This document shows, in pieces, positions 1-29,800 of a stretch of 64,000 bases of DNA; position 1 is the first letter of the stretch, and the number at the start of each line of letters is the position of its first letter. The notes below the pieces were generated by a model. It was not told the origin of the DNA. It worked only from the letters and a program-made list of their open reading frames with translations, and made no database searches. Source of the DNA: Perna viridis (lineage: Eukaryota). The stretch spans positions 1,612,001 through 1,676,000 of the forward strand of contig CM074511.1 in the NCBI GenBank assembly GCA_037379345.1. Reading direction: 5' to 3'. Both the position numbers and the translations under genes were made by a program.

Positions 1-74
1 CTTGACTACTCTTACGAGTGTTGCAAGGAAGGAACCTAATAAGAAATATTTTCTCCCTATATACAGCTTGTATT

Positions 75-500
75 TTAGACAGCAATCAAATTTTGGGGGT
101 ATATAGGAATTTCCTTGTCTGTCTGTCAGTTTACACATCTAATCAAACTTCTCATTAGTGCAACCCCCTCCTTAAATATTCAGTAGATTTTGATGTAATT
201 TTATTGGAATTTTGGGCATCAAATGCAGATTTGCACAAAGGAAGAATATGTTTTACATATATTATAAAAATGCCTGCAAAGATAGATAATGCTTATGGAT
301 TTAACATGTGAAATACTTTGAAGGCAACACTCTTCCTGAACTGTTCAATGTGTTTTATTGAAATTTGTTTATAAGAAGTTAAACATGGTATGTACATGTA
401 TTTATATAAGTAATTAATGAGGCATGAGGCAGTATCCAACTTATGGGTAAAGTCCATTTGAAGAAAGGGATATTTTAGTTTTGAGCTTGGTCATAGTATT
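75..500 (+). mobile_element. Degenerate Helentron/HINE-like non-autonomous element
   Basis: ggggtatatagga...ttgtctgtctgtc microsatellite followed by the family-typical body; related starts at ~960 and ~10400. Confidence 0.4.
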
Positions 501-571
501 CTTAGTTTTATAATAGGAATGAAATGTCATTATTTTCTCAAAACTGGTATAGATTTTTCTTTTTTCTGAAG

Positions 572-3500
572 TTTTCACCATCAGTTGGACCAGCAGGAGG
601 AAAGACAAATGTATCCATTAGTGGTATAAACCTTGGTAAAACAGCAACAGATATTCAATCAGGTGTGACAATAGCTGGAGTTAGATGTACTGTACTACCA
701 GAACATTATCAACCTTCTTTCATGTAAGTATTAAGGATGACTGATGAGAATAATATAGCTAGCTTAAGCTGAAGTTAAACAAGTGGCTATAAAAATTCCC
801 ATGATTTGCCCTTACCATAAGGTTTTGGGTATAAAGATGAATTGGTCTGTATATTATTTGTCTTTCTTGGCATCTATTATTCAAATGATTTGAAGTGTGA
901 TCATCTATACCCCATGTGAACCTTTGTTCGTCATTATATTCCATGGGAACAGAGTTCAGGGGGTATATAGAAATCACTTTTTTTTTTGTCTGGTCCATTT
1001 CTTCTTTGTTCTGTTGACATAGGCATACCAAATTTGGCGCATGTGATGATGAGTTAGGTACACCTTTGAGCTCAAGTAAAAAATATTGGACTTTAATATT
1101 CATACCATGTATCACCTGATTCTGTCCTTACATGACTTTTCAACATACACAGCCAAATGTGCCACATATGGTAAACATATGGTAATCATTTGATATTTAA
1201 CATGTGATGATTATCTATGTGATTCTCATATGTTAATTTTGGCTTTAAAACATATGGTAATTATATCTGTGAAAAGCACCTGATTATCATATAGTAAGTA
1301 ATTATTTATTATAGTGACATGTGTACAAAATCAAACTAACAAACAATAATTTTAACATGAAATAAGATACACCCGGCCCACTGGACCTATAAGTCACTTA
1401 AATTAGCTTTATCTATATACAATTTCAAGCAAAGTAAAACAACAGAAAAAAAAATCATTTTGAGTAAATGAACTGTCTACGCTTACAATAAGCTTTTAAA
1501 ATAAAATTTGAAGTTTGTCTGGGAAAATATTTCACAAGTTGAATTAACTGTTCACATTTTGGTAAGGTTTTGAAAGTATCAAGTCCATTTATGTTATTGA
1601 CAAGCTCAGTTCTGATATCATTGTAAAAACAACATTCGGTCAAAAAGTGTATTTCATCTTCAATTACATTGTCAGTGTCACACAAACGACATATTCTTTG
1701 ATGTTTGGGTTCACCTACATAGCGGCCTGTTTCGATCCTCAAAGGGAGAATTCCACATCTGAACTGTGCCATCATAGATCTCTCAGATTTCGATAAGTTC
1801 ATTTTGACGTATGGTTCAATTTGGAAGAACGATTTAAACGTTTTGTAAGTCCTCAACTTTGGTGAGTTTTCATTCATATCAAACCACTCATGTGCGTACT
1901 TTTCAACAAGAGAGTCATTTACGGTGTTAAGATCACATACGAGTTTATTACTAAATTGATGATTGAGTCCAATGTCATTCATCACAGACTTTAAATCTGA
2001 GGACCAGTTATTGTTACATCTGTTATAGTCCCACAGAAACACTTGTTTACATAATCTGTCGTCAGGCATTTTCATAAGTCTATTCCAGTATCTAACCATA
2101 TGTTGAAAATGTCTATGTCGTGATGGTAACCAACCCATATCTCCGATTATTGCCGATTTAGGTGCGAACTTGTGTACTCCTAAGAAGTATCTGATTGCTT
2201 TATTTTGAACATTGTCAATACAGTTGAAACCTTTAAATCCCCATATAGCAGCATTATAGTCAATAATCGGAGCCACACATGAGTAGAACAGTTTTTGAAA
2301 AGTACTAACTCCACAGTCCTTTAGCCCGTGCACTTTTGAGATTAGGGCCCCGAGGGCACGACCTCCAGCCTTAGCAAGATTATCGGCATTTGACTCGAAT
2401 GTTTTCTTTTCATGAAATATCACGCCTAGATACTTATATTGTTCTGTTATTTGTAGCATATTATCACCAATTTTAAACTGGAAGGATGTAATAATCATCC
2501 GATAATGATATGATAACTGAAATATATCAATATCATATGCTGCTCAATTTATATGATCATCATATAATGCAACCAAATGATTCTCATGTGTGGCACATTT
2601 GCATATGTAACATTAAATGTTTTAGTTTTAGTGACTCAAGCCAGCATGAAGATATGTGGGTGACAAGGGGTATCCTTTGTGAACTTTTCTCACAGTATTT
2701 CTGCTTTATGTACTAGTTCTACTGAATTAAGGAACTCCAGATTTATTTCTTTATAATTACAATAAATGTCACAAATGTAAAATGGGGCTTTGCTACTTAA
2801 TATCAGATGTCACTTTTATTCCTAACGAGCACCATTGAAAGTTTGAACTTCTGCACAGCGCATGGCTACTTGGGGATACTTGGTTTTTTTTTTTTTTTTT
2901 TCTCAAATACAAAATCAAAGGCAACAATGAGCTTGATATAGTCCCGTTACACGGTTGAACATCCATAACATTTATCTTACCTTTTTTAGTTTCGATTGAG
3001 ATTATTGTTTGTTGTCTTCTGAATTTTGTGGTTCTAGTCTACCTACAAAAATTGGAACCCCACAAACAATAATGAAGCCTAGTAAATCTAAAACTTCTCA
3101 CAGGTATCAGTATGACAAAGAGTAATCAAGGGAACCAAGATTTTAGTGGAAATAACAAAAAATGTAATCCAGGGACAAAGACCAGAAATGGGAAACAGAC
3201 AAACAGAACAATGAACATAAAATAACCAAAATAATATGTACAAAGCAACAAAAGTAAATGAGCAACTCAGACTCCACTGAAAACTGGGAGTATGGATCTG
3301 GTGCAACATTAGGATGAAAGGAAAATTGACTATATGAAATGAAAGTCATCACATTTGTTGTATAATTTGGTCAATAGTTTTCTAATCAACTGAACTCATA
3401 TGTTAAAATACAAGAAATAAGTCTTTGATTTTTTTTTCAGGTTTAAATGTGAGACAGAACCTACAGCCAAACCAAGCAGTGGCCCTGTACAAGTTATCAT

Positions 3501-6500
3501 TGGAAAAAAATATACAGCTGTATCCCAGAATAACTTTACATTTGTGGTGTGTAAACCTAGTCTGTAGCTGTTGTTTTACAGCAAATGCATAGCAGAAGTA
3601 GATTTAAGGATTTGTATTTTTGTTTGAATTTAAATTTTATTTTTAATATGAAATACAATGTTGTACTTCCCACTTAATCTGCACTAAACATAGGTCCAGG
3701 TTGCTTAGATACCTTAATTATGGAACCAGAAATAAATTATATCAAAATGTAATTGATAGACTCTGTTCTGAATTAAAGGTCAATTGAGAAGGACAATAAA
3801 GTTTGACCCTTGATTTAAATGGATCACTTACGCTGAAACATACATATATGTTATAAATTTTGTCTACATGATTAATGTTTATTGTTAGGAGCCTCAGGTT
3901 TTGTTTTTGACTCCCACAATGGGTCCACGATCTGGTGGTACAATGATTACTATTGGAGGAACAGACCTTAACGCTGGCACCAGTGTAACAGTATCTGTTG
4001 GTGGTAGTTCTTGTCAGGTCAAACAGTAAGTTCACACACTGTAGATTGATTCCATTGACCAAGTAGATCTTCTGCATTTTTTTGAGAGGGGAATTAATAG
4101 TCTTTGTTTAATACGAAAATCAAGGATTTTATAGTAGACTGTAAAAATCCTCATGTAATTTAATTTAATTTTTTGTTAATTCATAGATGCCAACATTTTT
4201 ATGAATATTTCAGGTAGAATATTTGATCTTACAGTCAACAGTCTATATCTATGGATTTCCAATTGTTCCATGCCATTTCTGGTTTAGAAAACATACTCCA
4301 ATCGCTAAGAAGTTTAGCAGAACCTTTGAAATAAGCACAATAGGAATTTTGATCATACAGTGTGTTAAAATCTCCCGAAAAGTTATTGATCTCTGAGGAT
4401 AAATCTTATTGTTGCTGGATAGTGAACAGAATGCGTTTTCATACCAGATTATTTGAGATTTCAATTTCAATTTCAATATGATGACTGACAAAAGTGTCAA
4501 ATTACGGATGACTAATTTTTTTCTAATGATTGGATCAAAAAGGAGTTATATCTATGTTAATTTTCAAATCATAGCATGAAATAATTCTGCAGAGTCAAAC
4601 GGTCAAAGTCATAATTTTTTTCATTTTACGGTAATAGAAATGTAGAAATTGTGATAGATATTTTTTCTGTATGTCAGTGAACCCTTATTATTCCTTCAAT
4701 ATTTATTTTAGTGTATCACTTAACACCCTTTCCTGTAAGACGAGCCCCCAGACAGGACCTGAGGATAGCTCTGAGATTGAAGTCAGTTTTGGAGGTTATA
4801 CTAGGCTGATGCAACCAAAGTTTTCATACATGGATGATCCTGAAATCTCAGAAATTTCTCCTAAAAAAAGTATTCTCAGGTAAATTGTCATATTCTCTTC
4901 TTATTTTCCTATCATGAATTCTTTCCTAAATCATTTTTTTTATAATTTGGTTTCTATGACATTATTAATTTCAGTTAGTGTTCTTTTTCAGGGGAGGGAC
5001 TAAGGTGGTAGTTAAAGGAACCAGGTTGAATATTGTACAGAGAGCTGAATTCTTTATAGAAGTTGGGAACCAGAAATTTTCAACAGTAAGTTAAGTCTCA
5101 TGCACGTTTTTTTTATTATTTGTAGGGTACCTATTTTCGTGTTTTTTTTTGTTAGTACCAAGAACCTGAAATTTAAGTACCGAATAAAGTGTTTATTAGT
5201 GATAGGGGTGTCCTTCCTTTGATCTTTACTTCCTTCTTTCCTTTTGTTACAGTGAGGGATACCCATCTCTTATCCATTACTTCTACACTACTGAATGAAA
5301 TTTATTGAAACTTTCACAGAATTTTCATTACATATTATGCACCTCCTATTTTAGAATTTGATCCAAATCAGTATGAAAGACAAAGAGTGTATGTTATCAA
5401 AGGGATGTATTAAGGTAATGAGCATGGCTCATAGTTATTCTAAAAATAACCACAAAAAAAACCACGGTATGTCATCTGTTTTAATGTAATGCTGTTGTGG
5501 TTTCTGAGGGGTTTTTTTTTGTTTACAGGTAAGCAGTTCCATGGTATATTGATTATGTTGATGAACTTTAATATGACCTTTGATCTTAGATGTTATGCTA
5601 TTGCATTGTCCAGTATATATAATAACACTTGTCATGTTTACATTTGTTTTGGAAATAACATGATTATGATAATCATTCTCATCAAGAATGTGTATTTTTT
5701 ATTTAGATATGTGATGCCAATAATATAGGAATTGCTCACTGGTTGACATGTAAAACACCAAAACTTAATGTAGACCCACAGAATGTCACACTAACCAACC
5801 CCAAAGCTGTCCATTATGGGTTTAACCTCGATGGAGTTAAGACATACCGTAACCTCTCTCTGAGTAAAGGAATGATGGAGTATTATCCTGATCCTGAAGT
5901 AGATATGTTTGACACAGAGAACCAGGAAGTTAAATATAAAGCTGGAAAACCTCTTGTTATTAAGGTATATTAGAGTTTTATTATTTCCATATATTTTGTA
6001 GTATAGATTAAAATACAACAAAGACTTTAAAATGTTCAAGTAGAAGTGTTGCTTTAAAACTGTGAAGTTAACATTATTAAATTCATTTACTTTTCTACCT
6101 TAATATACATATAATGTGCTGATGAGAATACCCTAAGGTTTGTGTCCTTTGAGTCAAAAAATTAGATAAACATGACTTGTCAAATTTCAGTATTCCTCTT
6201 TAAGTTTGTACCCTCGTTCAATAGCTAAAAACATTTAATTGTATTCTGCATCATTCAAGAGTTTTGACTGTTCATTTCAGGGTCACTTCCAAGGTATACA
6301 GCAAGTGATTATGACATAAAGTTTTGACTGTTCATTTCAGGGTCACTTCCAAGGTATACAACAGCTTGTTATGACATAAAGTCTTGACTGTTCATTTCAT
6401 GGTCACTTCCAAGATATACAGCAGCTGATTATGGCATAAAGTTTTGACTGTTCATTTTGGGGTCACTTCCAAGATAAACAACAGCTGATTATGGCATAAA

Positions 6501-9500
6501 GTTTTGACTGTTCATTTTGGGGTCACTTCCAAGATATACAACAGCTGATTATGACATAAAGTTTTGACTGTTCATTTCAGGGTCACTTCCAAGATATACA
6601 GCAGCTGATTATGGCATAAAGTTTTGACTGTTCATTTCACGGTCACTTCCATGGTTTACAACAGCTGATTATGACATAAAGTTTTGACTGTTCATTTCGG
6701 GGTCACTTCTAAGATATACTGCAGCTGATTATGACATAAAGTCTTGACTGTTCATTTCAGGGTCACTTCTAAGATATACAGCAGCTGATTATGGCATAAA
6801 GTTTTGACTGTTCATTTCACGGCCACTTCCAAGATATACAGCAGCTGATTATGACATGAAGTTTTGACTGTTCATTTCAGGGTCACTTCCAAGATATACA
6901 GCAGCTGATTATGACATGAAGTTTTGACTGTTCATTTCAGGGTCACTTCCAAGATATACAGCAGCTGATTATGACATGAAGTTTTGACTGTTCATTTCAG
7001 GGTCACTTCCAAGGTATACAACAGCTGGTTATGACATAAAGTCTTGACTGTTCATTTCATGGTCACTTCCAAGATATACAGCAGCTGATTATGACATGAA
7101 GTTTTGACTGTTCATTTCAAGGTCACTTCCAACATATACAGCAGCTGATTATGACATAAAGTTTTGACTGTTCATTTCAAGGTCACTTCCAAGATATACA
7201 GCAGCTGATTATGACATGAAGTTTTGACTGTTTATTTCAGGGTCACTTCCAAGATATACAGCAGCTGATTGTGGCATGAAGTTTTGACTGTTTATTTCAG
7301 GGTAACTTTCAGGGTATACAACAGCTGATTATCCAGGATCTGAAGGTATTTGTTGGGAAGTCTCTTTGTGAAGATAAGGAAGCTACGGACCTCACAGTTA
7401 ACTGTACTCCTCCTGCTAAAGCCAATGGATTAGATAGTAATGGCAATGCTGAGGTTTATGTAAGTATTATAGATAATTAGATTCAACCAGCATAGAACAC
7501 ACTAAATTATAAAGCAAGGTTGGAGCAAGCTTGAAAGATATTGATGCTCTAGTATTGCTATGAAATATAAAGACAATACTAATATAAGCTGTACTCTAAT
7601 CATAAAAGTTTTGATTACAGTTTGTTAAGGTCAGAAATGTAAATAAGTGTTAATTGAAGAAGTTCACAGTCATACTATTAAAGGGAAGGCAAAGTTATGG
7701 CATATTAAGACTGTTGATTTTCTTATGAAGTATTTTTTTACATAGAAGATCCTACACATGGATATCTGAATAAAATATTTTGAATCAAGAGTATTGCTGA
7801 ATATTGACAGTCACTTTGACTGCTTACTGTGAAATACAGGCCCATAGTTTAGGTAGGTTTGGAATCAAAATAGCAAAAGAGCATGAAAACTCTAAAAAAA
7901 ACATCAAGCTTAATTTGGTGAAGTACTATTAAAAGTTGAAACAATTTTGTCCTAATACCCCTCTAAAAGATTACTGGCTAAAGGGCCCGAAAAGTGCATA
8001 TTTCTGTTTTATTTCACAGATAAAACTAGGAAACTACCGCAAGAAGTTAGGGTACCTGAGTTACTTTGAGCCTGAATCAGCAGACAAACCTATAGCTCTC
8101 GGTATTATCCTTGGTGTGGTCATCCCCATAATTGCTATCATTTTACTGCTAGCATTCTGTATCATAAAGAGACAGAGGAAGAATGGACCAACTAAGAATG
8201 CTATACCTGATATGCTGAAGGATTACGATACAGTGAAGGAGGAGGAAGATATAGGACTGCTCTCTGTCAAGGCTGATCTTAATGGCCAGATTCCTAATAA
8301 TGGTAACTATCTCAATCTTCTTTACCTCCTTCAAGGCTGACCTCTTTGGCCAGATTCTTAATAATGGTAACTACCTCAATCCTTTAATACCTCCTTCAAG
8401 GCTGCTCTTAATAGCCAGATTCCTAATAATTGTGACTACCTCAATCTTCTTTATCTTCTTTAAGGCTGACCTCAGTGGTCAGATTCTTAATAATGGGAAC
8501 TACCTCAATCCTTACCTCTTCCAAAGCTGATCTTAACGGCAAATTACTAACAATCGGAAGAATGATAACCTCAATCATTCTTACTCTCTCCACCTCAGGT
8601 AGTTTAAACAACCTCTATCTCTCCAATATCTAGTGATGACATGTCAATCCATTGTTATAGTCAGTTCAACTCTCTTGTGAGCTGTTGCTTGATTGATAAG
8701 TAGTGCAAGGTAAAGGACTAACTTGATATCTCACGTTATCAGCTAATGATCATTAGAACAGTTGTCTGAACTATTTTGTACACATCAGACAGAAGGTGAT
8801 ACATTTCATGTTAAAATCCACAAAATTCACTGTTACTTATTATTCAGAAAGGTTACAGACCATGTATTCAGACTTTAGTATTTGGTTATTGCATTTTTAA
8901 GACAAAAATTATATTGATAGAGGTCTCACTAACCATTTCTAACATTTCCATTACTTTACATGTTAAAAAAGTATTTTTCAAAGTTTACTTGTGAATTGGC
9001 AGAATAAATGACATCTTTAAAGTTGTGAAGCTTGGAAAATAAGGCTTTCAAAATCATTATGCTAATGGTACGATGATTGTAGAAATTCTTTACAAAATTT
9101 ACTTGAATAAATAATACTGAAAATCCACATTTTTACCTGTTCTGCTAACTGACAGCATGGAGGCAAATTACTCACACATATAAGCAATATTCATACACTT
9201 TTGTAGTAAATTACAAATATGATTTTAAAGTACAAATTCTCAGCTTTATTTTGACTACCTTTAATCAGAAAACATACAAATAATGCACTGACAATGCATA
9301 GATCTAGGTTCAGTGTGTTTTTGGTACTACATAGGGGGTGGCCATTTGACCCAGAAGTGGTTAGTGAGACCAGAATACAGAATTGGGTCTCACTAACCAC
9401 TTCTAACGTTTCCATTACTTTACATGTTAAAAAAGTAATTTTCAAAGTTTCACTTTTTAATTCCCAGGACAAATGACATTTTAAAGTTGCATACTGTTGC

Positions 9501-12500
9501 AAAGCTGGGAAAATAAGGCTTCCAAAATCATTATGCTAATGGTACGATGATTGTAGAAATTCTTCACAAAATTTACTTGAATAAATAATACTGAAAATCC
9601 ACATTTTTACCTGTTCTGCTAACTGACAGCATTGAGGCAAATTACCCACACATGTAAACAATATTCATACACTTTTGTAGTAAATTACATGTATGATTTT
9701 GAAGTACACATTCTCAGCTTTATTTTGACTACTTTTAATCATAATACACACAAATAATGCACTTACAATGCATATGTCTAGATTCAGTGTGTTTTTAGTA
9801 CTACATAGGGGGGTCACCCTTTGACCCGGAAGTGGTTAGTGAGACCTTGGCACTTCAGAATAGTTATCATTCTTGATTTCATTAGATACAGAGGGAAATG
9901 AATGTATGAATTTTTAAAAATACAAATGTGTATACAGATTGTAGGTGTTGACCAACAAAGCATGGTTTGTTCATTGGGTGTTTTTTTGTATCACCTGAAC
10001 TTTATATGTGTTGTTATTAGTGGTAGCATCGGATAAACTGATGAAATATTATGACAGATATTTATTTGTATTTGTAGATACAGGTCCCTACATAACAGAG
10101 CTGTTATCTCGTATCCCTGATGAAAGTATGAAACAGAAGATCTCCACATTCCTCATTGCTAGGAGTCAGATGGACATAGGAGAAGTTCTGGCCAAAGGTT
10201 TGTGTCATGTCACTGTTTTAATAATCAAATACATGAGAAGGTTTAGAAAGTAATAGTATTTGTTACTGTGTGACAGTGATTACATTGCATACTTAGGCAG
10301 TGGTTTAGTTATCATTTATTATAAGACATAGTTACAGACATAGTACAGATTTTTCACACATACTTTAGAGGCATTTAAAAAGTAAAGCTTTGAAGGAGAG
10401 TGGGGTATACAGTTTTACCCTTGTCCTTTAGTCCATGTTTCCATCCGTATCAATTTTTTCCATCACAGTTTTCTTAGCAGCTTGAAATTTGAACACATTC
10501 TTCCCATAGGTATGCAAGATGGTGGGATCCTTTTTCAGATAAATTTGACAACAACTTCATGTTTACCTAGAACTTTGTTTATTTTCCTTATATTGTGATT
10601 GACGGGAGGGTATCACTAGTGAGCCATTAATCATAGATTTATTGTTTTAAAGAACCAAATCAAAAAAATGTAAGATACTATGAACTTAATTTTATAGAAA
10701 ATGTCAGAATTTAGATTGTAGATTTTTAATGACATATTTCTTTGCAGGTTTCTATGGTAACACCTACAAAGCTGAATATAAAATATCTGCTGATAAGGAT
10801 CCATCTCAAGTTACCATTAAAGTCTTACAAGGTAAGGAGAAAAACAATAATCTTTTTAATTTGCAAAAGATTTTATTTGGTGGTATGGGTTCATTAATTG
10901 TTTTGACTTGTGTCTTTAATATATGGACTGGATTTTATAGCTAGAATAAAAGTTATAGAGGAGGTTATGTTTTGTGAACAGGTTTCCATACAGACACTGA
11001 TTCTATTGATAACTTTGTACAACACATGGTGACATACGGAGATTTACAACACTACGCACTAGTGCCTTACCTTGGGGTCTGTCTGGGAGCTGTTGAGGAC
11101 CCAATTCTAGTCTCATCATATACCTCATGTACTGATCTCAAAACATATGTTAAAGATGTTACTAAGGTGAGTTTACAGTAAGTGAGAAAGTTGAGTCTAC
11201 TTAGTGAGTTTTAGCATACAGTAAATGTGGGCCAATAAGTGAGAAAGTTTAGTCTACTTAGTGAGTTATAACAGTAAGTGAGTGAAATTATTGAATAAGT
11301 TGAGACTGAGTGAGATATTGTGGAGTTGAAAATATGGATCTAATGAATATTTTTACTTTCTTTAGTAGAACTTGTTCATGTCAGCATTGAAGTTGGGAAA
11401 TTCATAAAGGAAGATTGGACTTAAAATTGTTTTATTTCAATTCCAAGGGGTATCATTTTAAGTAGCAGATAAAAAATTGACCTACACTAACCCCTTGCCT
11501 GTTCCAAAAATTGATTAAATTCCTGCAAACTTAATTAAAGTAATGATAAATTTCAAAATTAAATAATTATCCCACAACACAAGTAAACTGTATGTTTAAT
11601 TACAGAATTTAACAGTATCAGACATACTAGAGATGTCACAACAAATAGCTGATACAATGGTGTATTTACAGAGCTTAGATTTAGTTCATGGTAATCTAGC
11701 TGCCAGAAATTGTTTGTAAGTAGGTTTAATAGTTCAATTCATCCATATATGTCATTTGGTGTTTAGAAATCAAAAGAAAGAGGCTGATCCAGGCACTCCT
11801 TTGAAGAATTGCTTATGTTTGAATATTAATACCAAGATTGATACTGAAACAGCTTTCAAGACAAATTAATACTTACAATCAACATGACTGTTCATGATAA
11901 CTAGTATGTATCTAGTCAGTATCATAAATAATTAGTATGTATCTAGTCAGTATCATAAATAATTAGTATGTATCTAGTCAGTATCATAAAAATAACTAGT
12001 ATGTATCTGGTCAGTATCATAAATAACTAGTATGTATCTAGTCAGTATCATAAATAATTAGTATGTATCTAGTCAGTATCATAAAAATAACTAGTATGTA
12101 TCTAGTCAGTATCATAAATATAACTAGTATGTATCTGGTCAGTATCATAAATAATTAGTATGTATCTAGTCAGTATCATAAATAACTAGTATGTATCTAG
12201 TCAGTATCATAAAAATAACTAGTATGTATCTAGTCAGTATCATAAATATAACTAGTATGTATCTGGTCAGTATCATAAATAATTAGTATGTATCTAGTCA
12301 GTATCATAAATAACTAGTATGTATCTAGTCAGGATCATAAATATAACTAGTATGTATCTAGTCAGTATCATAAATAACTAGTATGTATCTAGTCAGGATC
12401 ATAAATAACTAGTATGTATCTAGTCAGGATCATAAATATAACTAGTATGTATCTAGTCAGTATCATAAATAACTAGTATGTATCTAGTCAGGATCATAAA

Positions 12501-14197
12501 TATAACTAGTATGTATCTAGTCAGTATCATAAATAACTAGTATGTATCTGGTCAGTATCATAAATAACTAGTATGTATCTAGTCAGGATCATAAATAACT
12601 AGTATGTATCTAGTCAGGATCATAAATAACTAGTATGTATCTAGTCAGGATCATAAATATAACTAGTATGTATCTGGTCAGTATCATAAATAACTAGTAT
12701 GTATCTGGTCAGTATCATAAATAACTAGTATGTATCTAGTCAGGATCATAAATAACTAGTATGTATCTAGTCAGGATCATAAATATAACTAGTATGTATC
12801 TAGTCAGGATCATAAATAACTAACATTTCAGATTAACAGAGAATAACAAAGTACAGTTAACAGATTATGGTTACACACAGTTATTTACATCTGAGTTTTA
12901 TTCTATGGAGGATGATAAACGTCAACAAATAGTTAAATGGATAGCACCAGAATGTCTGGATAACTTCCAGTTTACTACATCCTCTGATATTGTAAGTCAA
13001 TAATGTGTACATACACTTTACACTGTGTATAACTGTAGAGACAGTTCCTACGTATGAGATATGAAATACTTATTTGTTCCTTCACTTAAATATATGCAAT
13101 AAGTTCACCTAAAATTTTACATTCACATCCATGAAAAAACTAAAACAGTATGTTGAATGAGAAATAGTCATGAACATCATATTTACATGACATCATGTTA
13201 CATTCATTTACATTACAGCAAATACACAATTTGATGGAAAATGTCCAGTTTTCTGCTAAACAGAGAGGGATTATTTTAAAGATGAATATAATACATAAAT
13301 ATTTTGATTAACTTGCTGATAAAACTTGAACCAAAATTTAAAGAAGATAAGATTTGTGTAGATATGATCGCCACTGTTGTATTTCAGTGGTCTTTTGGTA
13401 TAGTGCTATGGGAGTTGTTAACAAGGGGCGTAACTCCTTATCCAGATGTGGAACCGAAGAATATTAAGAGTTATTTGAATGGAGGCAAAAGATTAAAGAA
13501 ACCTAGACAATGTCCTGAGTCTCTGTAAGTATTTTATAATTAAATGAACTTAGTTATTCGGAAAATATGTGGTGGTTTTTCAGATACTTTTTATTACACT
13601 TTTGTACAGACACTTATTGTACACCTGTTGTACAGACAACTATTGTACAGACACCTGTTGTACTGACACCTATTGTATAAAGTAATGTTGCATGGAATAT
13701 CAAAGTTATAAAGCAACTGTTCCAAAAAATACTTTCTTAGTGGTAGCACAGGTCACACAGGTCAAGTCTTTCCCAAGCCTTTCAAACTGGTTTATAGAGT
13801 ATTTACTGCTTTGTAAGGGTTCTGATTTATGTGTATGAGTAAGGTGGCACAGCTTCCTGCCAGTTATTGCTTCTGAAAGCTAGTACAATAAAATTTGGAT
13901 GAGCAGACCAGTGCAAAGCAGGGTGTGTTTGATGGATCCAACATTCTTATCCTTAATGGTATGAAATGTTAGACTACAGTCAATCAAAACAAAACATGAA
14001 ATTATGGTTTTTGTTACAGGTACTTGTTGATGTTACAGTGCTGGACTGAAGTAGCTAATGATAGACCAACATTCCATGATATCCTCTCTGAAATCAAGAA
14101 ATTCATATCTAAAGAAGAATCTAATGATATTACTCAACCCTTATCCACTAAAATAGAACCTGGAGGTTCATCTGAGTACTTAGAGGTTGTTGGATAA
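572..14197 (+). CDS. MET/RON(HGFR)-like receptor tyrosine kinase, 3' portion (IPT/TIG repeats, TM helix, pseudokinase domain); 5' exons lie upstream of the window
   Basis: GT-AG exons join in frame: 572-723, 3441-3546, 3889-4025, 4712-4879, 4992-5085, 5707-5964, 7301-7459, 8020-8302, 10078-10197, 10748-10831, 10982-11166, 11606-11715, 12832-12991, 13388-13524, 14020-14197 (TAA). IPT motifs FSPSVGPAGGKTNVSISG, TPTMGPRSGGTMITIGG, SPKKSILRGGTKVVVKG. TM IALGIILGVVIPIIAIILLLAFCII followed by KRQRK. Kinase motifs KGFYG, [45 protein letters not shown], CW...RPTF. IPT+TM+TK is the MET/RON architecture. Confidence 0.9.
1146..2609. mobile_element. MITE with long imperfect terminal inverted repeats, interrupted by the LINE
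   Basis: TACACAGCCAAATGTGCCACATATG (1146) pairs with CATGTGTGGCACATTTGCATATGTA (2585-2609); similarity continues inward (aatcatttg...gatgat). Confidence 0.6.
1302..2498 (-). mobile_element. 5'-truncated non-LTR retrotransposon (LINE; C-terminal part of RT ORF)
   Basis: 347-aa ORF 2498-1455 with YKYLGV, APIIDYNAAIWG, LRIETGRY and RICRLC...EDEIHFLTEC; 3' UTR ends in an AATAAATAAT-like tail near 1302. Confidence 0.88.
3118..3310 (-). repeat. Dispersed repeat, related to the copy at ~49245-49490 (and through it to ~44105-44210)
   Basis: aatcaagggaac...acaaagacc...agcaactc(a/g)gactc is shared with 49247-49420. Confidence 0.55.
6261..7332 (+). repeat. 60-bp tandem array (18 copies) of the splice acceptor plus first ~32 nt of exon 7301
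   Basis: Unit gttttgactgttcatttcag|ggtcacttccaagatatacagcagctgattatgacataaa with exact 60-bp period; the last copy is the functional acceptor. Confidence 0.95.
8269..8590 (+). repeat. ~64-bp tandem array (5 copies) of exon end plus splice donor
   Basis: Unit aaggctgatcttaatggccagattcctaataatg|gtaactatctcaatcttctttacctccttc; the first copy is the real exon end at 8302. Confidence 0.9.
8922..9846. mobile_element. Two adjacent copies of a ~455-bp MITE (8922-9371, 9386-9846)
   Basis: Each copy is bounded by TIRs GGTCTCACTAACCA(C/T)TTC / GAAGTGGTTAGTGAGACC; bodies are highly similar. Confidence 0.85.
10395..10647 (+). mobile_element. Short Helentron/HINE-like element
   Basis: Start gagtggggtatacagttttacccttgtcc; end gggagggtatcactagtgagcc...ttattgtt. 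Confidence 0.4.
11895..12831 (+). repeat. ~31-bp minisatellite (~30 copies) running into the acceptor at 12831
   Basis: Unit (t/g)atcataaataactagtatgtatctagtcag; the final unit becomes gatcataaataactaacatttcag|exon. Confidence 0.93.
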
Positions 14198-15448
14198 CTT
14201 TGAACACAAGTGTCAAATTGACAAGGTGTTGTGACAATCAGTAAGGGGAGATAACTCATAGAAGATGATTGAAGGGAAACAATTGACATTTAAGTCTGTG
14301 TTCTAGCTACTAATTGTGCCATTTTTTACCCGCAAACTAATTGATGATTATTGTACTTTTAAAGAACATTATGATGCAATATTTTTTAAACATTTTACTG
14401 TTTTTATTATTAATATTTAAGTTTATCATCAATATTGAAGTCTATGCATTAAATTTATTCAGTATTCATTTTTGAATTTGAATTGCTTTTTTTAACACAT
14501 ACATTGAACAATACCTTGCCTGTATCTCTTCCATTTGTGAGTCATTAAATGACTAATCCCTTGAGTCAGGATTTATCAATTATTTATGTAGATACAATAA
14601 TCTCAACTCCAAAATCTACCCTGCCAGTTTATGTAGATACAGATATCTCAACTCAAGAATCAACTTTGCCAGTTTGTTGCCTTTAGAAACAACTTCATAG
14701 AGTATTGCTACATGTAGACAAAGTATAAATAATGTCTGCATGTGGTATGACCCAAGGGGGTTAAAAGCCAGAGTAATAAAGATGGGGTACTTATACATAT
14801 TTTTGCATTTAAAGAATCTCATTTTTTTTTTTTTTTATTTAAATGGTCGTTTTTATGCATATCCTTTGACTTGTTAACATTTTACATTTTGTGATATAAT
14901 CTATTTATCTTGTTTCTTTTACACAATATATCTTTGATGGAATATTTTGTTTATTAAAATTGAGATAAATTTTGTACCAATATCTTAAGTGATACAAGCT
15001 GAAGTCAGTGGTAAAAAAAACTTGACAATTCAGGCATTAATACTTAGTCCATATCTTTGGGACCAGATCATTCCTTTAATTAATTTGATGCTAGTACATT
15101 AATGTTTAACTCAATAGGTCTATGCAGGCATGCTGTATTATACAGTTTGATAAGTGTCCTCTTTAATACTTCGTCCCTGTAAATGGTGCTTTATTTATTT
15201 TTACTTAATACATGCATTAACACATTTAAGTATTTGTAGTATGCCATTTTTTAATTTTGTTACCAAGTTTTTTTATTGCAGTATTTGATGTTTTATATCA
15301 TTGATATGTGATGGAACCTGACCTTTTGTGTGTATTTTAGTGTCATTTCTCTCCAAGAGAGTTCTGTGTTGTGTAATATTTAAGTGTTGCGCTTTTGTAT
15401 ATTTTACTTGATATTTATATTAATGTAATGATAGGAGCTTAAAATGAC

Positions 15449-23800: not shown

Positions 23801-26800
23801 CTCTCTACAAAAATTTATCAACTTTTAAAATTGTATATACTGACACATTAATAGTCTAAATATAAAATAAACACCATACAGTCCAGAACCAATTCACCAG
23901 TCATATAAAGTTATGATCCAATTCAATAGTCATATAAAGTTCTGAGCTAATTCACCATTCATATAAAGTTCTGGGCCAATTCACCAGTCATATTAAGTTT
24001 TTAGTCAATTCACTATTCATATAAAGTTTTGAGCCACTTCACCAGTCACAGTTTTGAGCCACTTCACCAGTCACAGTTTTGAGTCAATTCACCATTCATA
24101 TAAAATTCTGAGCCAATTCACCATTCTTATAAAGTTCTGAACCAATTTACCATTCATATGAAGTTTTGAGCCAATTCACCAGTCATATACATTTCTGAGC
24201 CAATTTACCAATCATGTAAAGTTCTGGGCCAATTCACTAGTCACATAAAGTTCTGAGCCAATTCACCAGTCACATAAAGGTTTGAGCAAATTCACCAGTC
24301 ATATACATTTCTGAGCCAATTTACCAATCATGTAAAGTTCTGGGCCAATTCATTAGTCATATAAAGTTTTGAGCTAATTCACCATTCATATAAAGTTCTG
24401 GACCAATTCACCAGTCATATTAAGTTTTTAGTCAATTCACCATTCATATAAAGTTTTGAGCCACTTCACCAGTCACAGTTTTGAGTCAATTCACCATTCA
24501 TAAAAAATTCTGAGCCAATTCACCATTCATATAAAGTTTTGAGCCAATTCATTAGTCACAGTTTTGAGGAAATTCACCAGTCATATAAAGTTTTGAGCCA
24601 ATTCACCATTTACATAAAGTTCTGAGCATATTCACCATTTATACAAAGTTTTGAGCTAATTCACTAGTCATATAAAGTTCTGAGCCAATTCACCAGTCAT
24701 ATAAAGTTCTGAGCCAATTCACCATTTATACAAAGTTCTATTTTCTTAAGTAAGATGTTACTAAAAGAAATAATGAAAGTCATGAAAAAGATAAAAAAAA
24801 AAAAAAGAAAACATCAGAAGTTTTTTGAATTGCTTACATAGACAGTTTATAAGTAGATAGAGCAGCATTAACTACATGAGGTGGCATATCATCTAACTCT
24901 AATGCTTCAGCATTGATCTCTATCACTAGGTCCTGGAGTCTGTTTAACAACCCAATGTTCTTGTAGTTAAATATAAATACTATTCTACTGAATGGACACT
25001 GAAATAAAATATAGTCTCATAGTATCAAATACATGTATAAAATTCTCACATCATCAAATGCATGTATAAACATCTGATAGCATCAAGTATATGGTACTGA
25101 AAGGCTACCCCATGGTTCATTTTATCAGTTAAATAATTTCAGTATTTGAATATTTTGATTTCAAATATTCACCTCTTTAAATGGCAATAAGAGATTTGTC
25201 TGTTCACAATCAAATAAGTGATGTACACTTTTGTTTAAAAAAATATACAAGGTCACAAAAGAGTTGAATGACTTTACTGAATCACTGAGTATAGCATTAT
25301 AATGTATGTTAAAAATAGTTAAACAGATATAATGTAATATATTTGTTAGACCATACCTCTATAGTGAGTGGATATTCTATCTTGGCTGATACTTTCTCTA
25401 CACTGACTATAGGACAAGCTAATTCAATTTTGACCTTTAACATAGAATGTGACTGGATATATTGTCCTGACACTAAAGGTTTATCAACTGTAATAAAAAA
25501 TAAATATTATGTATTATACAGAGACAAATTATCAATCTGTCAAGTGTGTGTTGGATCATTCTGACAATAAACTAAAACAGCAAATACATACCAAAATGAA
25601 CTAAAGAATTTATTACTAAGCAAGCTCTGGAATGTTAAACCTACCAGATAAATGTGACACAGTAAAACCTAAAACTCTATGTTGCAATGTTTCTGTCAAG
25701 ATGGAGAAGGGTCAAGGTGGTTCAATCTAGAAAGTCTTTTACAAAATAGAAAAGATCAGTGATATTGTCTGATTTTAAGTTCCTCCAAAATAAGACTGTT
25801 TACTCTAATGAAAATTTCCAATTTGTCCAAAAATGTTTAAAAAATTATACCACATAAGATGAATTATTTTCAAATTGAAGGATGATAGGGTTGAAAAACA
25901 AAGCCAATAATATCACTGGAGGTTGAGTGGCCTATGCAGACAAAAATCTAAGCAACAAATACAACCTGGCCCATCAACAGCTCTGGCCATACCAACTATC
26001 TGAACAACAAATACTACCTGGCCCATCAACAGCTCTGGTCATACCAACAATCTGAACAACAAATACTACCTGGCCCATCAACAGCTCTGGCCATACCAAC
26101 AATCTGAACAACAAATACTACCTGGCCCATCAACAGCTTAGGCCATACCAACAATCTGAACAACAAATACTACCTGGCCCATCAACAGCTCTGGTCATAC
26201 CAACAATCTGAACAACAAATACTACCTGGCCCATCAACAGCTCTGGCCATACCAACAATCTGAACAACAAATACTACCTGGCCCATCAACAGCTCTGGCC
26301 ATACCAACAATCTGAACAACAAATACTACCTGGCCCATCAACAGCTCTGGCCATACCAACAATCTGAACAACAAATACTACCTGGCCCATCAACAGCTCT
26401 GGCCATACCAACAATCTGAACAAATACTACCTGGCCCATCAACAGCTCTGGCCATACCAACAATCTGAACAACAAATACTACCTGGCCCATCAACAGCTC
26501 TGGCCATACCAACTATCTGAACAACAAATACTACCTGGCCCATCAACAGCTCTGGTCATACCAACAATCTGAACAACAAATACTACCTGGCCCATCAACA
26601 GCTCTGGCCATACCAACAATCTGAACAACAAATACTACCTGGCCCATCAACAGCTCTGGTCATACCAACAATCTGAACAACAAATACTACCTGGCCCATC
26701 AACAGCTCTGGCCATACCAACAATCTGAACAACAAATACTACCTGGCCCATCAACAGCTCTGGCCATACCAACAATCTGAACAACAAATACTACCTGGCC

Positions 26801-29800
26801 CATCAACAGCTCTGGCCATACCAACAATCTGAACAACAAATACTACCTGGCCCATCAACAGCTCTGGCCATACCAACAATCTGAACAACAAATACTACCT
26901 GGCCCATCAACAGCTGAGGCCATACCAACTATCTGAACAAATACTACCTGGCCCATCAACAGCTCCGGCCATACCAACGATCTGAACAACAAATACTACC
27001 TGGCCCATCAACAGCTCTGGTCATACCAACAATCTGAAAAACAAATACTACCTGGCCCATCAACAGCTCCGGCCATACCAACAATCTGAACAACAAATAC
27101 TACCTGGCCCATCAACAGCTTTGGCCATACCAACAATCTGAACAACAAATACAACCTGGCCCATCAACAGCTCTGGCCATACCAACTATCTGAACAACAA
27201 ATACTACCTGGCCCATCAACAGCTCCAGCCATACCAACAATCTGAACAAATACTACCTGGCCCATCAACAGCTCCGGCCATACCAACAATCTGAACAAAT
27301 ACTACCTGGCCCATCAACAGCTCTGGTCATACCAACAATCTGAAAAACAAATACTACCTGGCCCATCAACAGCTCCGGCCATACCAACAATCTGAACAAC
27401 AAATACTACCTGGCCCATCAACAGCTCCGGCCATACCAACTATCTTCCCTTCTGATTTTTCTCCACTCAGTATCTCTGGTATAGGACAGTTATGGATTGG
27501 TACTTTGAGATGTAGGTACTGATGTCCTAACAACAACTCAGATAGATCTATCTTAGCCACACCAAATGGATCCCAGGGTTTGTTACGACCAATAAATGGA
27601 TTGTTTACAGTTCTCCTACCTATAAAAACAAATACAATATAGAAGGCAGATTCCAACAATCAACTTATTAGAAATAATTCTCCAATAATAAATGACTCAG
27701 TAATCCATTAATTGTTTGTTGACATGTTTAATATTTTCATTAAAGAATACAAAAAAATCTCTCAGTAACAATAGCAATAATTAATATGATGATGGTAATT
27801 GGTTAATAGAATTTACATACTTGCTACAGTTCCAACATTACTGATTTTTTCATCCTCTAAATCATCACCAAACAAGGATGCTTTAGGTTTACATTCCTCC
27901 CCCTTCCTGTCCCGATCATGTATCTCTATCTCTAAAGCAGGACCATTTAAGTATTCTCGTAGTTCTGAAGGTTCTATTGTACCTTAAATCAAAACATATA
28001 AAAACATCAATCAATTTTAAAATCTAAGGTCTTTTTATAATGTAATCTTTACATTCAAAATCAGTTAATTACTTGAAACTGCAAGAACTTACTGATATAA
28101 CTTTTGGGCTAAAAAAAATTACAGACCACAAACATTAAGTAAATACCTGCTAACACAACATTGATATCATCCCAGTACAGGTTCCTGCCATGTTCTCTTC
28201 CTACACTAATGTGTTCTGGCTGTTTGTAAAACTTATATTTACAGAATACTGGGTTACATCTAGTTAAAATAATAATAATCAATTTACAAGACAAAACAAG
28301 ATGAAAAAATATACTTGATGATGAAGTATGGAGTGACATTTATATTTACTTCCTTTTAAATAGCACATTCACATGGATTCACATAATCTTAAATATGAAT
28401 AATTAAAATGTATTTATTCCAGTGATAAACTATTTTAGCACCCAATTGTAAGAAAAAAGTTTCATTTTACTTGTTGACACATTATGGGAGATAACTCCTG
28501 CTTACCTGAGATGCAGGTCATCAAATGATAATGGAAAGTCTGGCATATTCTTTGCTGATGAAATTTTGAATATAAGTGGATTTAGTTCTTGTCGTTGTTC
28601 TTCATTCATTAAGGGTGCATTTATCTCTACAGTAACAAAGCAATCCTCGACACCCTGGACAGGGTTCTCTAATCTGTTGGTAATAGTCTTCATTCCTGAA
28701 AAACACAGAAACCACAGAGCACCTGTAATATTTGACACAGACCCTTTAGAGCACCTGTTGTCACTGAAACAGCACTATCAGAACATCTGAAGTTATAAAA
28801 AACAGAACCCATAAAACACCTGTATTTATTAACATAGAACACATATAGCACCTGCAGTAATTATCACAGAACACATGAAGCACTTGAAGTTATAAACATA
28901 GAACCCATAAAACGCATGTAGTTATTGACACTGAACACATAGAGCATCTGCAGTTATTGACATAGAACACATGAAGCACCTAATGTTATGAACAAAGACC
29001 CCATAAAACACCTGAAGTTATGAACAAAGAACCCGTAGAACACATGAAGCTATTGACATAGAACACATACAGTACCTGTAGTTATTGACACAGAACACAA
29101 AGAGCACCTGCAGTTATGAACACAGAATCCATAGAACACCAGTAGTTATTGACATGGAACACCTAGAGCACCTTTGGTTATTGCCATGGAACACCTAGAA
29201 CACATGTTGTTACAGACATAGCATTTCCAAAGTCTACAGTTCTTAATTAGGCTTTAACAATGAAATAACAAAAAAGTGAATATATTCAGAGGTACACATT
29301 ATTATTAAAAAAAATGCAAAATATTTTACTTTTTCATCATCAATGAGTCAGTAAAATGTTTGCTATATGACAGCTAATAACCTGGCTACACTTAATTCTG
29401 TTATGTCTGGTGTTATGATATTAACACTTCCATAACATATGAGATACACACCTGCAAACAGTGTGGACATCTTGATTGGGATCATACAGACACCAAACTG
29501 TTTAGCATGCTCAGCTGCCTCCTTCTGGGCTGCATCCATCTTCTTTGGACGCTTTGGTCTCATTTGTGTCAGCTCTTTATCACCTCCTCTACTAGAACCT
29601 GTAGATTATATCTAAGTCATGATAACAAAAAATATTCAATCTATCAAGTACTGCAACCTCTTTCAAAGTATATCAAATACTGTGGAAGTACATTAATTCA
29701 TGGATACCAAATTTGTGGATAAGGAAAGAAACACAAGTTCATGGATTCTAGAATTCATGGTTTTGAGGTTTTCAGTATACACATCTATGGGAATTTTCTT

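Follow-up and report, generated by a model that had tools for sequence, protein, structure and literature searches.

Positions 10078-14197 of the plus strand in a 64,000-nucleotide stretch of Perna viridis DNA (the window, G000:C1:1612001-1676000) encode the tyrosine-kinase fold of a Met-like receptor. On balance, this segment is likely to be the 3' end of the mollusc orthologue of Met-LP, with a kinase domain conserved as a HER3-like pseudokinase that acts as a partner or scaffold. The Met-LP family has been described from Lophotrochozoa (Capitella, Aplysia) and echinoderms (Junqueira Alves 2019, PMC6374515, available text); its members combine a complete plexin-type ectodomain with a single membrane span and, where plexins have their GAP domain, an intracellular tyrosine-kinase fold. 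What appears to be new is that the mollusc branch of this known but little-studied family is a conserved, HER3-like predicted pseudokinase.

Motif positions in the kinase domain were fixed by aligning the exon peptides, as separate fragments, to 126 kinase domains. The catalytic loop reads His-Gly-Asn (HGN; CAT GGT AAT, 11687-11695) within HGNLAARN, placing Asn (AAT, 11693-11695) at the position of the Asp in the canonical His-Arg-Asp (HRD) motif. Pseudokinases are defined by sequence as lacking the β3 Lys, the HRD Asp, or the Asp of the Asp-Phe-Gly (DFG) motif, and the exchange of HRD Asp for Asn confirms the Perna domain as a pseudokinase in this sense. Further departures from the canonical state include Ala at the first glycine of the Gly loop (AKGFYG, which straddles the exon 1/2 junction), an αC segment reading FVQH where Met-family kinases read F-L-x-E, such that Glu is replaced by His, QHYALV in place of HPNVL, DYG in place of DFG, and FY in the activation loop where canonical Met has twin tyrosines. 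The β3 Lys (VTIK), the DFG Asp, and the catalytic-loop Asn are retained. A first-pass annotation, made from the letters of the window, had reported the HGN loop at these codons together with FVQH, AKGFYG, DYG, and HYALV; direct reading and the 126-domain alignment bore out each of these statements, and the pseudokinase prediction that accompanied them is strengthened by the conservation described below.

The kinase fold is encoded by seven open exon pieces, each translated separately, whose edges were set by RNA joints (Table 1). All seven have an AG acceptor, each of the six internal donors is GT, and the reading frame stays open from end to end. PF07714 matched five of the seven exon peptides (exons 3-7) at E ≤ 0.003, and the curated cut-off was passed by three of the seven. 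Reads or contigs of four runs from four studies (X21, X12, X13, and X2) were mapped over window 10000-14300. In the stranded raw RNA run X21, 81 reads were placed, every first mate lying on the minus strand as is expected from plus-strand RNA in most stranded libraries, and the six GT..AG joints were backed by 5, 3, 7, 4, 14, and 6 reads, respectively. The identical six joints were present in a 5222-base transcript contig of X13 and a 3138-base contig of X12, a run labelled as another organism. The sole exon letter difference in the RNA runs was C>T at 14104 in X12, which by frame reading is synonymous (TTC to TTT). DNA contigs of run X2, from a separate study, covered all exons with identical letters, and their three differences were all intronic. 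Ten further runs (RNA or of uncertain kind) contained 0.27-0.44 of the sampled words, a share that we infer to approximate the exonic fraction of the stretch. The gene is expressed and correctly spliced; the intact frame and splice sites claimed for it earlier were recovered as an open frame with GT..AG edges and six joints in RNA, and the start at 10078 and end at 14197 proved exact by RNA joints and stop codon. Codons 11687-11695 were covered in X21, X12, X13, and X2, with no alternative letter in any of the four. Because the RNA joints are used and the four runs agree, HGN is not the product of misread bases and does not belong to an unexpressed gene, and an error or allele at these codons was ruled out as an explanation.

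The gene begins ~17 kb upstream of the window, where an open Sema exon of 387 codons occupies G000:C1:1594831-1595991, followed in order by more Sema pieces, PSI, TIG_plexin and TIG_2, and a second PSI. Its own exons scored 25.8 bits for Sema, 31.3 and 25.9 for PSI, 23.9 and 34.4 for TIG, 23.4 and 19.4 for TIG_2, and 16.1 for TIG_plexin, the last being under the cut-off. A single hydrophobic stretch was found in the transmembrane and juxtamembrane exon, with the kinase fold downstream; the end of this exon was taken from an RNA loose end before 10077 and a GT at 8303, and its start from a CAG acceptor and homology with Mytilus P0170. The plexin GAP domain (PF08337) had no match between G000:C1 1.594 and 1.676 Mb, in or after the gene. 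The Perna gene thus resembles plexins in its ectodomain set (Sema, PSI, TIG_plexin, TIG_2, TIG) but does not have their RasGAP cytoplasmic domain. MET, RON, and the canonical invertebrate Met receptors share with it the Sema-PSI-IPT-transmembrane-kinase plan; in canonical Met, however, the ectodomain is truncated to Sema, one PSI, and four IPT, with neither TIG_plexin nor TIG_2, and its HRD, DFG, αC Glu, twin tyrosines of the activation loop, and YVN-type sites in the tail are all kept, none of which is canonical in the Perna gene. Because its ectodomain is of the complete plexin type, with a second PSI and plexin-type TIG exons, the Perna gene is assigned by domain content to the Met-LP family and not to MET/RON proper. 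The earlier label of MET/RON-like receptor is corrected accordingly to a receptor of the Met-LP type.

Searching the full protein library with the Sema exon gave 1002 matches at E ≤ 0.001, and a kinase-region search with an Ostrea edulis relative as query gave 189 at E ≤ 1e-20, the best 120 of 189 being used. Among the matches listed, the closest full-length proteins were Mytilus coruscus P0170 and M. edulis P0171, with identities of 85, 75, 78, 68-75, 91, and 81-83% over kinase exons 2 to 7, respectively, and 62% over the Sema exon. P0170 (1582 aa, versus ~1340-1390 aa for canonical Met) carries Sema, two PSI, TIG_plexin, TIG_2, TIG, and PF07714, all above cut-off; its ectodomain set is that of plexins, and canonical Haliotis Met is without it. 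The Mytilus orthologues share the AKG, VTIK, FVQH, HGN, and DYG states of the Perna gene. HRD was found neither in these close orthologues nor as another allele in the four runs, either of which the first-pass annotation had said would overturn its prediction.

The substitution extends across the phylum. Among the matches listed, 24 mollusc Met-LP rows were compared, from nine named bivalves, nine named gastropods, the cephalopod Argonauta, and five Logan proteins, with five near-copies left out. The HRD Asp was Asn in 21 of the 24 (HGN, HRN, HHN, or HSN); the position read Asp in two, the scallops Argopecten and Mizuhopecten (HGD), both of which read GFG for DFG, and the catalytic-loop exon was absent from the Pinctada model. 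Conservation was otherwise high for the β3 Lys (23/24), the catalytic-loop Asn (24/24), and the Gly-loop glycines (22-23/24), and the remainder of the catalytic loop (LAARN) and a KWMAPE-like P+1 loop were retained. The DFG Asp was present in 18/24 and the DFG Phe was Tyr in 18/24; the second activation-loop Tyr was present in 20/24; and the αC position held Glu in four rows, Asp in eight, and other residues in 12. The Aplysia californica protein P0180 (1622 aa) reads IVHRNLAARN and DYV. By comparison, canonical Met and non-mollusc long-form rows from molluscs, chelicerates, an echinoderm, hemichordates, amphioxus, fish, amphibians, and the annelids Paralvinella and Ridgeia were canonical at all these positions (27/27, bar one gap), and the HRD Asp was present in all 97 rows outside the mollusc group in the 126-row table. 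HRD and DFG are likewise retained by the long forms of the annelid Paralvinella and the hemichordate Glandiceps. In the source records the mollusc proteins are named plexin-A4-like, plexin-A2-like, plexin-B1, PLXNA, Plexin b2a, and hepatocyte growth factor receptor(-like). The Pinctada imbricata model (P0006), which lacks the catalytic-loop exon, contains the β3 block (EQDNTVAI[KR]ALQGK) eight times; either the gene prediction or the assembly is at fault, or an array of exons such as those in this window has been read into the protein.

A maximum-likelihood tree was built from 57 of the 126 kinase domains over 328 columns, with rows hand-picked as one per named species or cluster and ROS, insulin-receptor, and FGFR rows as outgroup. 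Met-LP and canonical Met kinase domains fell in one Met-family group. Within it, 23 mollusc Met-LP rows formed one clade (support 100/99) in which cephalopods, bivalves, and gastropods separate like species, and the sister of this clade (99/96) comprised the annelid Paralvinella protein and one further protein, both long forms with HRD and DFG. P0180 lies inside the 100/99 clade with the Mytilus orthologues and may be the Acali Met-LP of the 2019 paper. The simplest reading of these states would be one Asp to Asn change on the mollusc stem, with a later Asn to Asp change in scallops after loss of the DFG Asp. Whether the catalytic Asp was lost at the mollusc base more than half a billion years ago and the domain kept since as a HER3-like pseudokinase, with the annelid form active, is a finely balanced judgement.

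Exon 6 compared with solved kinases places MET chains at ranks 2 to ~40 and RON next, with one EGFR construct above. Among solved chains, the nearest to the HGN exon are TYK2 (4oli_A) and insulin receptor (1p14_A), in which Asn likewise stands in for the catalytic Asp: the JH2 domain of 4oli reads LVHGNVCGRN, its JH1 domain IHRNLAARN, and the insulin receptor chain VHRNLAARNC. We take 1p14 and the JH1 domain of 4oli to be engineered inactive forms. The parallel with JAK JH2 drawn in the first-pass annotation is thus real for HGN, as the TYK2 chain reads, but is confined to that one motif; JAK rows are distant in the kinase search and not close relatives, and JH2 is a cytoplasmic domain that regulates the JH1 with which it stands in tandem. 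Because it has the same pair of changes, αC His and H-x-N, HER3 and not JAK JH2 is, by motif comparison, the nearest counterpart among the receptor pseudokinases known so far. In the available text of a 2026 review, which counts eight human receptor pseudokinases and none in the MET family, HER3 combines αC His and HRN with an intact VCIK and DFG and an accessible ATP site (PMC13259870 Table 2), is the only human receptor pseudokinase with exactly this αC His and HRN pair, and serves as an allosteric activator whose tail is phosphorylated by partners (PMC13259870). The Perna gene likewise combines the αC Glu to His change and H-x-N with a retained β3 Lys and DFG Asp, has active paralogues in the same genome, and carries tyrosine motifs outside the domain that are potential partner substrates. 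It differs from HER3 in its unrelated ectodomain and kinase subfamily, in Ala at the first Gly-loop glycine, and in DYG for DFG, and its partner, ATP binding, and allostery are predicted.

The paralogues in question were found through the Sema exon, which matches four other places on the same chromosome, two of which are also matched by kinase exons 5 and 6. These two plus-strand genes, at ~944-986 kb and 1391-1416 kb, both read FVHRDLAARNCM and have DFG regions of KVADFGLARD and VVGDFGLSRD; by these motifs, they are canonical Met-like kinases. Both questions posed in the first-pass annotation accordingly received an answer, in that HGN recurs in the Mytilus orthologues, with Asn in 21/24 mollusc relatives, and active-type paralogues exist on the same chromosome. 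A search of the same genome with the HGN exon returned only itself and one weak match; because this short query missed the known canonical paralogues, its blank result means little.

Two tyrosine motifs, markedly conserved between mollusc classes, lie outside the kinase domain. By-eye reading of the alignment identified a juxtamembrane GPY-[IV]-x-ELL motif with its Tyr in 22/24 mollusc rows, and the C-terminal end reads GGS-[TSQ]-EYLEV-[IV]-G, with EYL-x-V in 18/24 rows. EYLEV presumably resembles known SH2 sites. Since canonical invertebrate Met tails carry YVN-type sites, the Met-LP tail Tyr may descend from a Met docking site.

Taken together, these features favour Met-LP as a ligand-binding partner or scaffold that would need an active kinase in trans, because the catalytic base is missing, the ATP and metal residues are mostly kept, HER3 provides a parallel, and the tyrosine motifs are conserved. 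The receptor probably signals without its own phosphorylation of substrates. In the mechanism we propose, nucleotide would still be bound with poor or no phosphate transfer, and a ligand, possibly a semaphorin, would join Met-LP with an active kinase, candidates for which are the canonical Met-like receptors and cytoplasmic tyrosine kinases. The pseudokinase domain would then serve as the allosteric partner, and the tyrosines of GPY-I-x-ELL and EYLEV would be phosphorylated in trans to dock SH2 proteins.

Several observations weigh against this reading. Weak residual activity would be possible with the Lys, catalytic-loop Asn, and DFG Asp still in place, and HER3 and JAK2 JH2, both with Asn, show activity of this kind. 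Loss of the Asp is not uniform, as pectinids read HGD. The juxtamembrane Tyr is missing in 2/24 rows, and the tail differs in 6/24, three heterobranch gastropods having another Tyr motif and three bivalves Phe or no such tail. Exon 4 alone ranks TYK2, insulin receptor, and TrkB above MET among solved chains, and the place of the Perna gene on the tree was obtained via its Mytilus orthologues and per-exon comparisons. The Met-LP kinase domain has also changed about twice as much as canonical Met (five matched taxa, 10 pairs, median ratio 2.26, range 1.09-2.89), a difference that may point to partial relaxation. With PF07714, Met-LP scores 234-250 bits versus 309-311 for canonical relatives; on the other hand, mytilids show higher identity over the kinase domain than over the Sema exon (68-91% over exons 2-7 versus 62%). 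The roughly doubled rate and lower scores, set beside this mytilid identity, indicate a kinase domain that is relaxed relative to an active kinase and still constrained.

The main rival is that Met-LP is a weakly or unconventionally active kinase, in which ATP and metal are bound and slow phosphotransfer, e.g., to its own tyrosines, is the real function. Its support comes from the near-complete retention of the β3 Lys (23/24), catalytic-loop Asn (24/24), and Gly-loop glycines (22-23/24), from the DFG Asp in 18/24 and second activation-loop Tyr in 20/24, and from the accessible ATP site of HER3 in the available text of PMC13259870. We regard this as unlikely, given a catalytic base lost in 21/24, the lack of the DFG Asp in the two rows that have the catalytic Asp, an αC Glu in only 4/24, and the engineered inactive nature of the solved chains that carry Asn at this position (1p14 and the JH1 domain of 4oli). 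Alternatively, the intracellular domain could be a mere folded anchor for a plexin-like ectodomain that acts in adhesion, as a decoy or semaphorin sink, or with the adjacent plexin. A complete plexin-type ectodomain, a plexin gene head to head ~34 kb away, and loss of the tail Tyr in some bivalves would all fit such an anchor. However, the C-lobe, juxtamembrane region, and tail exceed the Sema exon in conservation to Mytilus (68-91% versus 62%), which a mere anchor would not need, and LAARN and the KWMAPE-like P+1 loop are retained, making this explanation quite unlikely.

A recently decaying paralogue or pseudogene might be suspected from the joint degradation of several motifs (AKG, FVQH, HGN, DYG, and HYALV) and the PF07714 scores of 234-250 versus 309-311 bits. 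It is nevertheless highly improbable, as the frame is unbroken, RNA uses every splice site, Mytilus has the same states, and bivalves, gastropods, and a cephalopod form a clade with species-like topology; a pseudogene was ruled out on the RNA-used splice sites, the motif states shared with Mytilus, and the phylum-wide clade. The idea that the HGN codons were misassembled or misread has a negligible chance of being correct, since RNA reads, two transcript assemblies, and one DNA assembly from four studies agree (4/4 runs) and nothing speaks for it.

Met-LP as published is a family of tyrosine kinases; the mollusc members considered here, including the Aplysia protein, are without the catalytic Asp, the two scallops excepted. 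The available text of PMC6374515 treats Met-LP proteins as receptor tyrosine kinases and leaves ligand and signalling mode open, and the terms pseudokinase, inactive, dead, and active site have 0 occurrences in its main text, supplements being outside this count. A review (PMC10084454) repeats the family and, in its available text, also calls the domain a tyrosine kinase domain, and the available texts of the oyster kinome (PMC4883820) and the holozoan tyrosine kinome (PMC8662651) make no mention of it. No published statement of Met-LP or any MET-family receptor as a pseudokinase was found in a literature that was mostly non-subscription, supplements excluded.

Table 1. Exons of the Met-LP gene within the window (window coordinates).
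Feature	Position	Strand	Basis
IPT/TIG ectodomain exon within open frame	524..727	+	PF01833 23.9 bits; frame edges, not exon edges
IPT/TIG ectodomain exon within open frame	3901..4029	+	PF01833 34.4 bits
Membrane-proximal IPT-region exons, two open frames (4671-4883, 4978-5094)	4671..5094	+	By-eye likeness to relatives (EVSFGGY..., GGT..V.G..L); Pfam silent
Membrane-proximal ectodomain exon in open frame	5743..5973	+	By-eye likeness (..HYGF.LDGV..Y.N.S); Pfam silent
Transmembrane and juxtamembrane exon (PIALGIILGVVIPIIAIILLLAFCII ... IPDMLKDYD ... KADLNGQIPNN)	8020..8302	+	RNA, GT, homology
Kinase-region exon 1: juxtamembrane GPYITELL motif and Gly-loop start (..LAK/G)	10078..10197	+	RNA joints, edges, motif conservation
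Exon 2: remaining Gly loop (AKGFYG), FYGNTYKAEYK...VTIKVLQ, β3 VTIK	10748..10831	+	RNA joints, alignment, edges
Exon 3: αC FVQH (Glu to His), QHYALV, hinge; piece includes FVQHMVTYGDLQHYALVPYLGVC	10982..11166	+	Pfam, RNA joints, alignment
Exon 4: αE and catalytic loop; His-Gly-Asn codons 11687-11695	11606..11715	+	Pfam, RNA joints, alignment, edges
Exon 5: DYG, activation loop (FYSMEDDKRQQIVKW), APE; piece includes QLTDYGYTQLFTSEFYSMEDDKRQQIVKWIAPEC	12832..12991	+	Pfam, RNA joints, alignment
Exon 6: C-lobe, best conserved part; 91% identity to Mytilus	13388..13524	+	Pfam, RNA joints
Exon 7: kinase-fold end (CW..RPTF, CWTEVANDRPTF), C-terminal tail ...GGSSEYLEVVG, TAA 14195-14197	14020..14197	+	Pfam, RNA joints, tail comparison, edges	

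The intron that precedes the transmembrane exon contains 17.9 copies of a 60-bp unit (window 6260-7332), and two copies of a 474-bp unit, 90% alike, occupy 8922-9846 in the intron before kinase exon 1. At 8267-8554, 4.5 copies of a 64-bp unit reproduce the last ~35 bases of the transmembrane and juxtamembrane exon together with its splice donor, the first copy being the donor used in RNA. Most of the intron between the catalytic-loop and DYG exons consists of a 31-bp unit present ~29 times (11897-12822), within which the X2 DNA contigs break up. A 347-codon intronic open frame on the minus strand (1455-2498) resembles, by reading, the C-terminal part of a non-LTR (long terminal repeat) retrotransposon reverse transcriptase. 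Elsewhere in the window, positions 26001-28000 reach a GC content of up to 0.42 with a GC skew of -0.43, compared with ~0.32 GC elsewhere.

The neighbouring gene on the minus strand is a plexin: its Sema exon (G000:C1:1559219-1560334) has plexins as best matches, and GAP exons lie at 1469095-1479758. This gene (minus strand, 1560334 to 1469095) and the Met-LP gene are arranged head to head, ~34 kb apart. A kinase domain for this neighbour was considered and rejected, as none was seen in a by-eye scan of 40 kb of the minus strand and the neighbour is a plexin with GAP exons. Four Sema-PSI-IPT receptor genes are thus clustered within 0.7 Mb (G000:C1:0.94-1.63 Mb), with window 1-14197 as the right end of the cluster. 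A plexin adjacent to Met-LP in a starfish is described in the available text of PMC6374515.

Receptor pseudokinases are few, and each is instructive on non-catalytic kinase signalling. The public names of these proteins are misleading in this regard, as none flags the predicted kinase inactivity. If the proposed reading is correct, mollusc Met-LP would be a receptor-pseudokinase family additional to the eight known from humans, with no precedent in the MET lineage, and would probably link semaphorin-type ligands to tyrosine-kinase signalling via canonical Met-like receptors or the adjacent plexin. The finding bears on what Met-LP receptors bind and how they signal, and the active annelid sister and the mollusc form would constitute a natural before-and-after pair for the conversion of a kinase into an allosteric partner.

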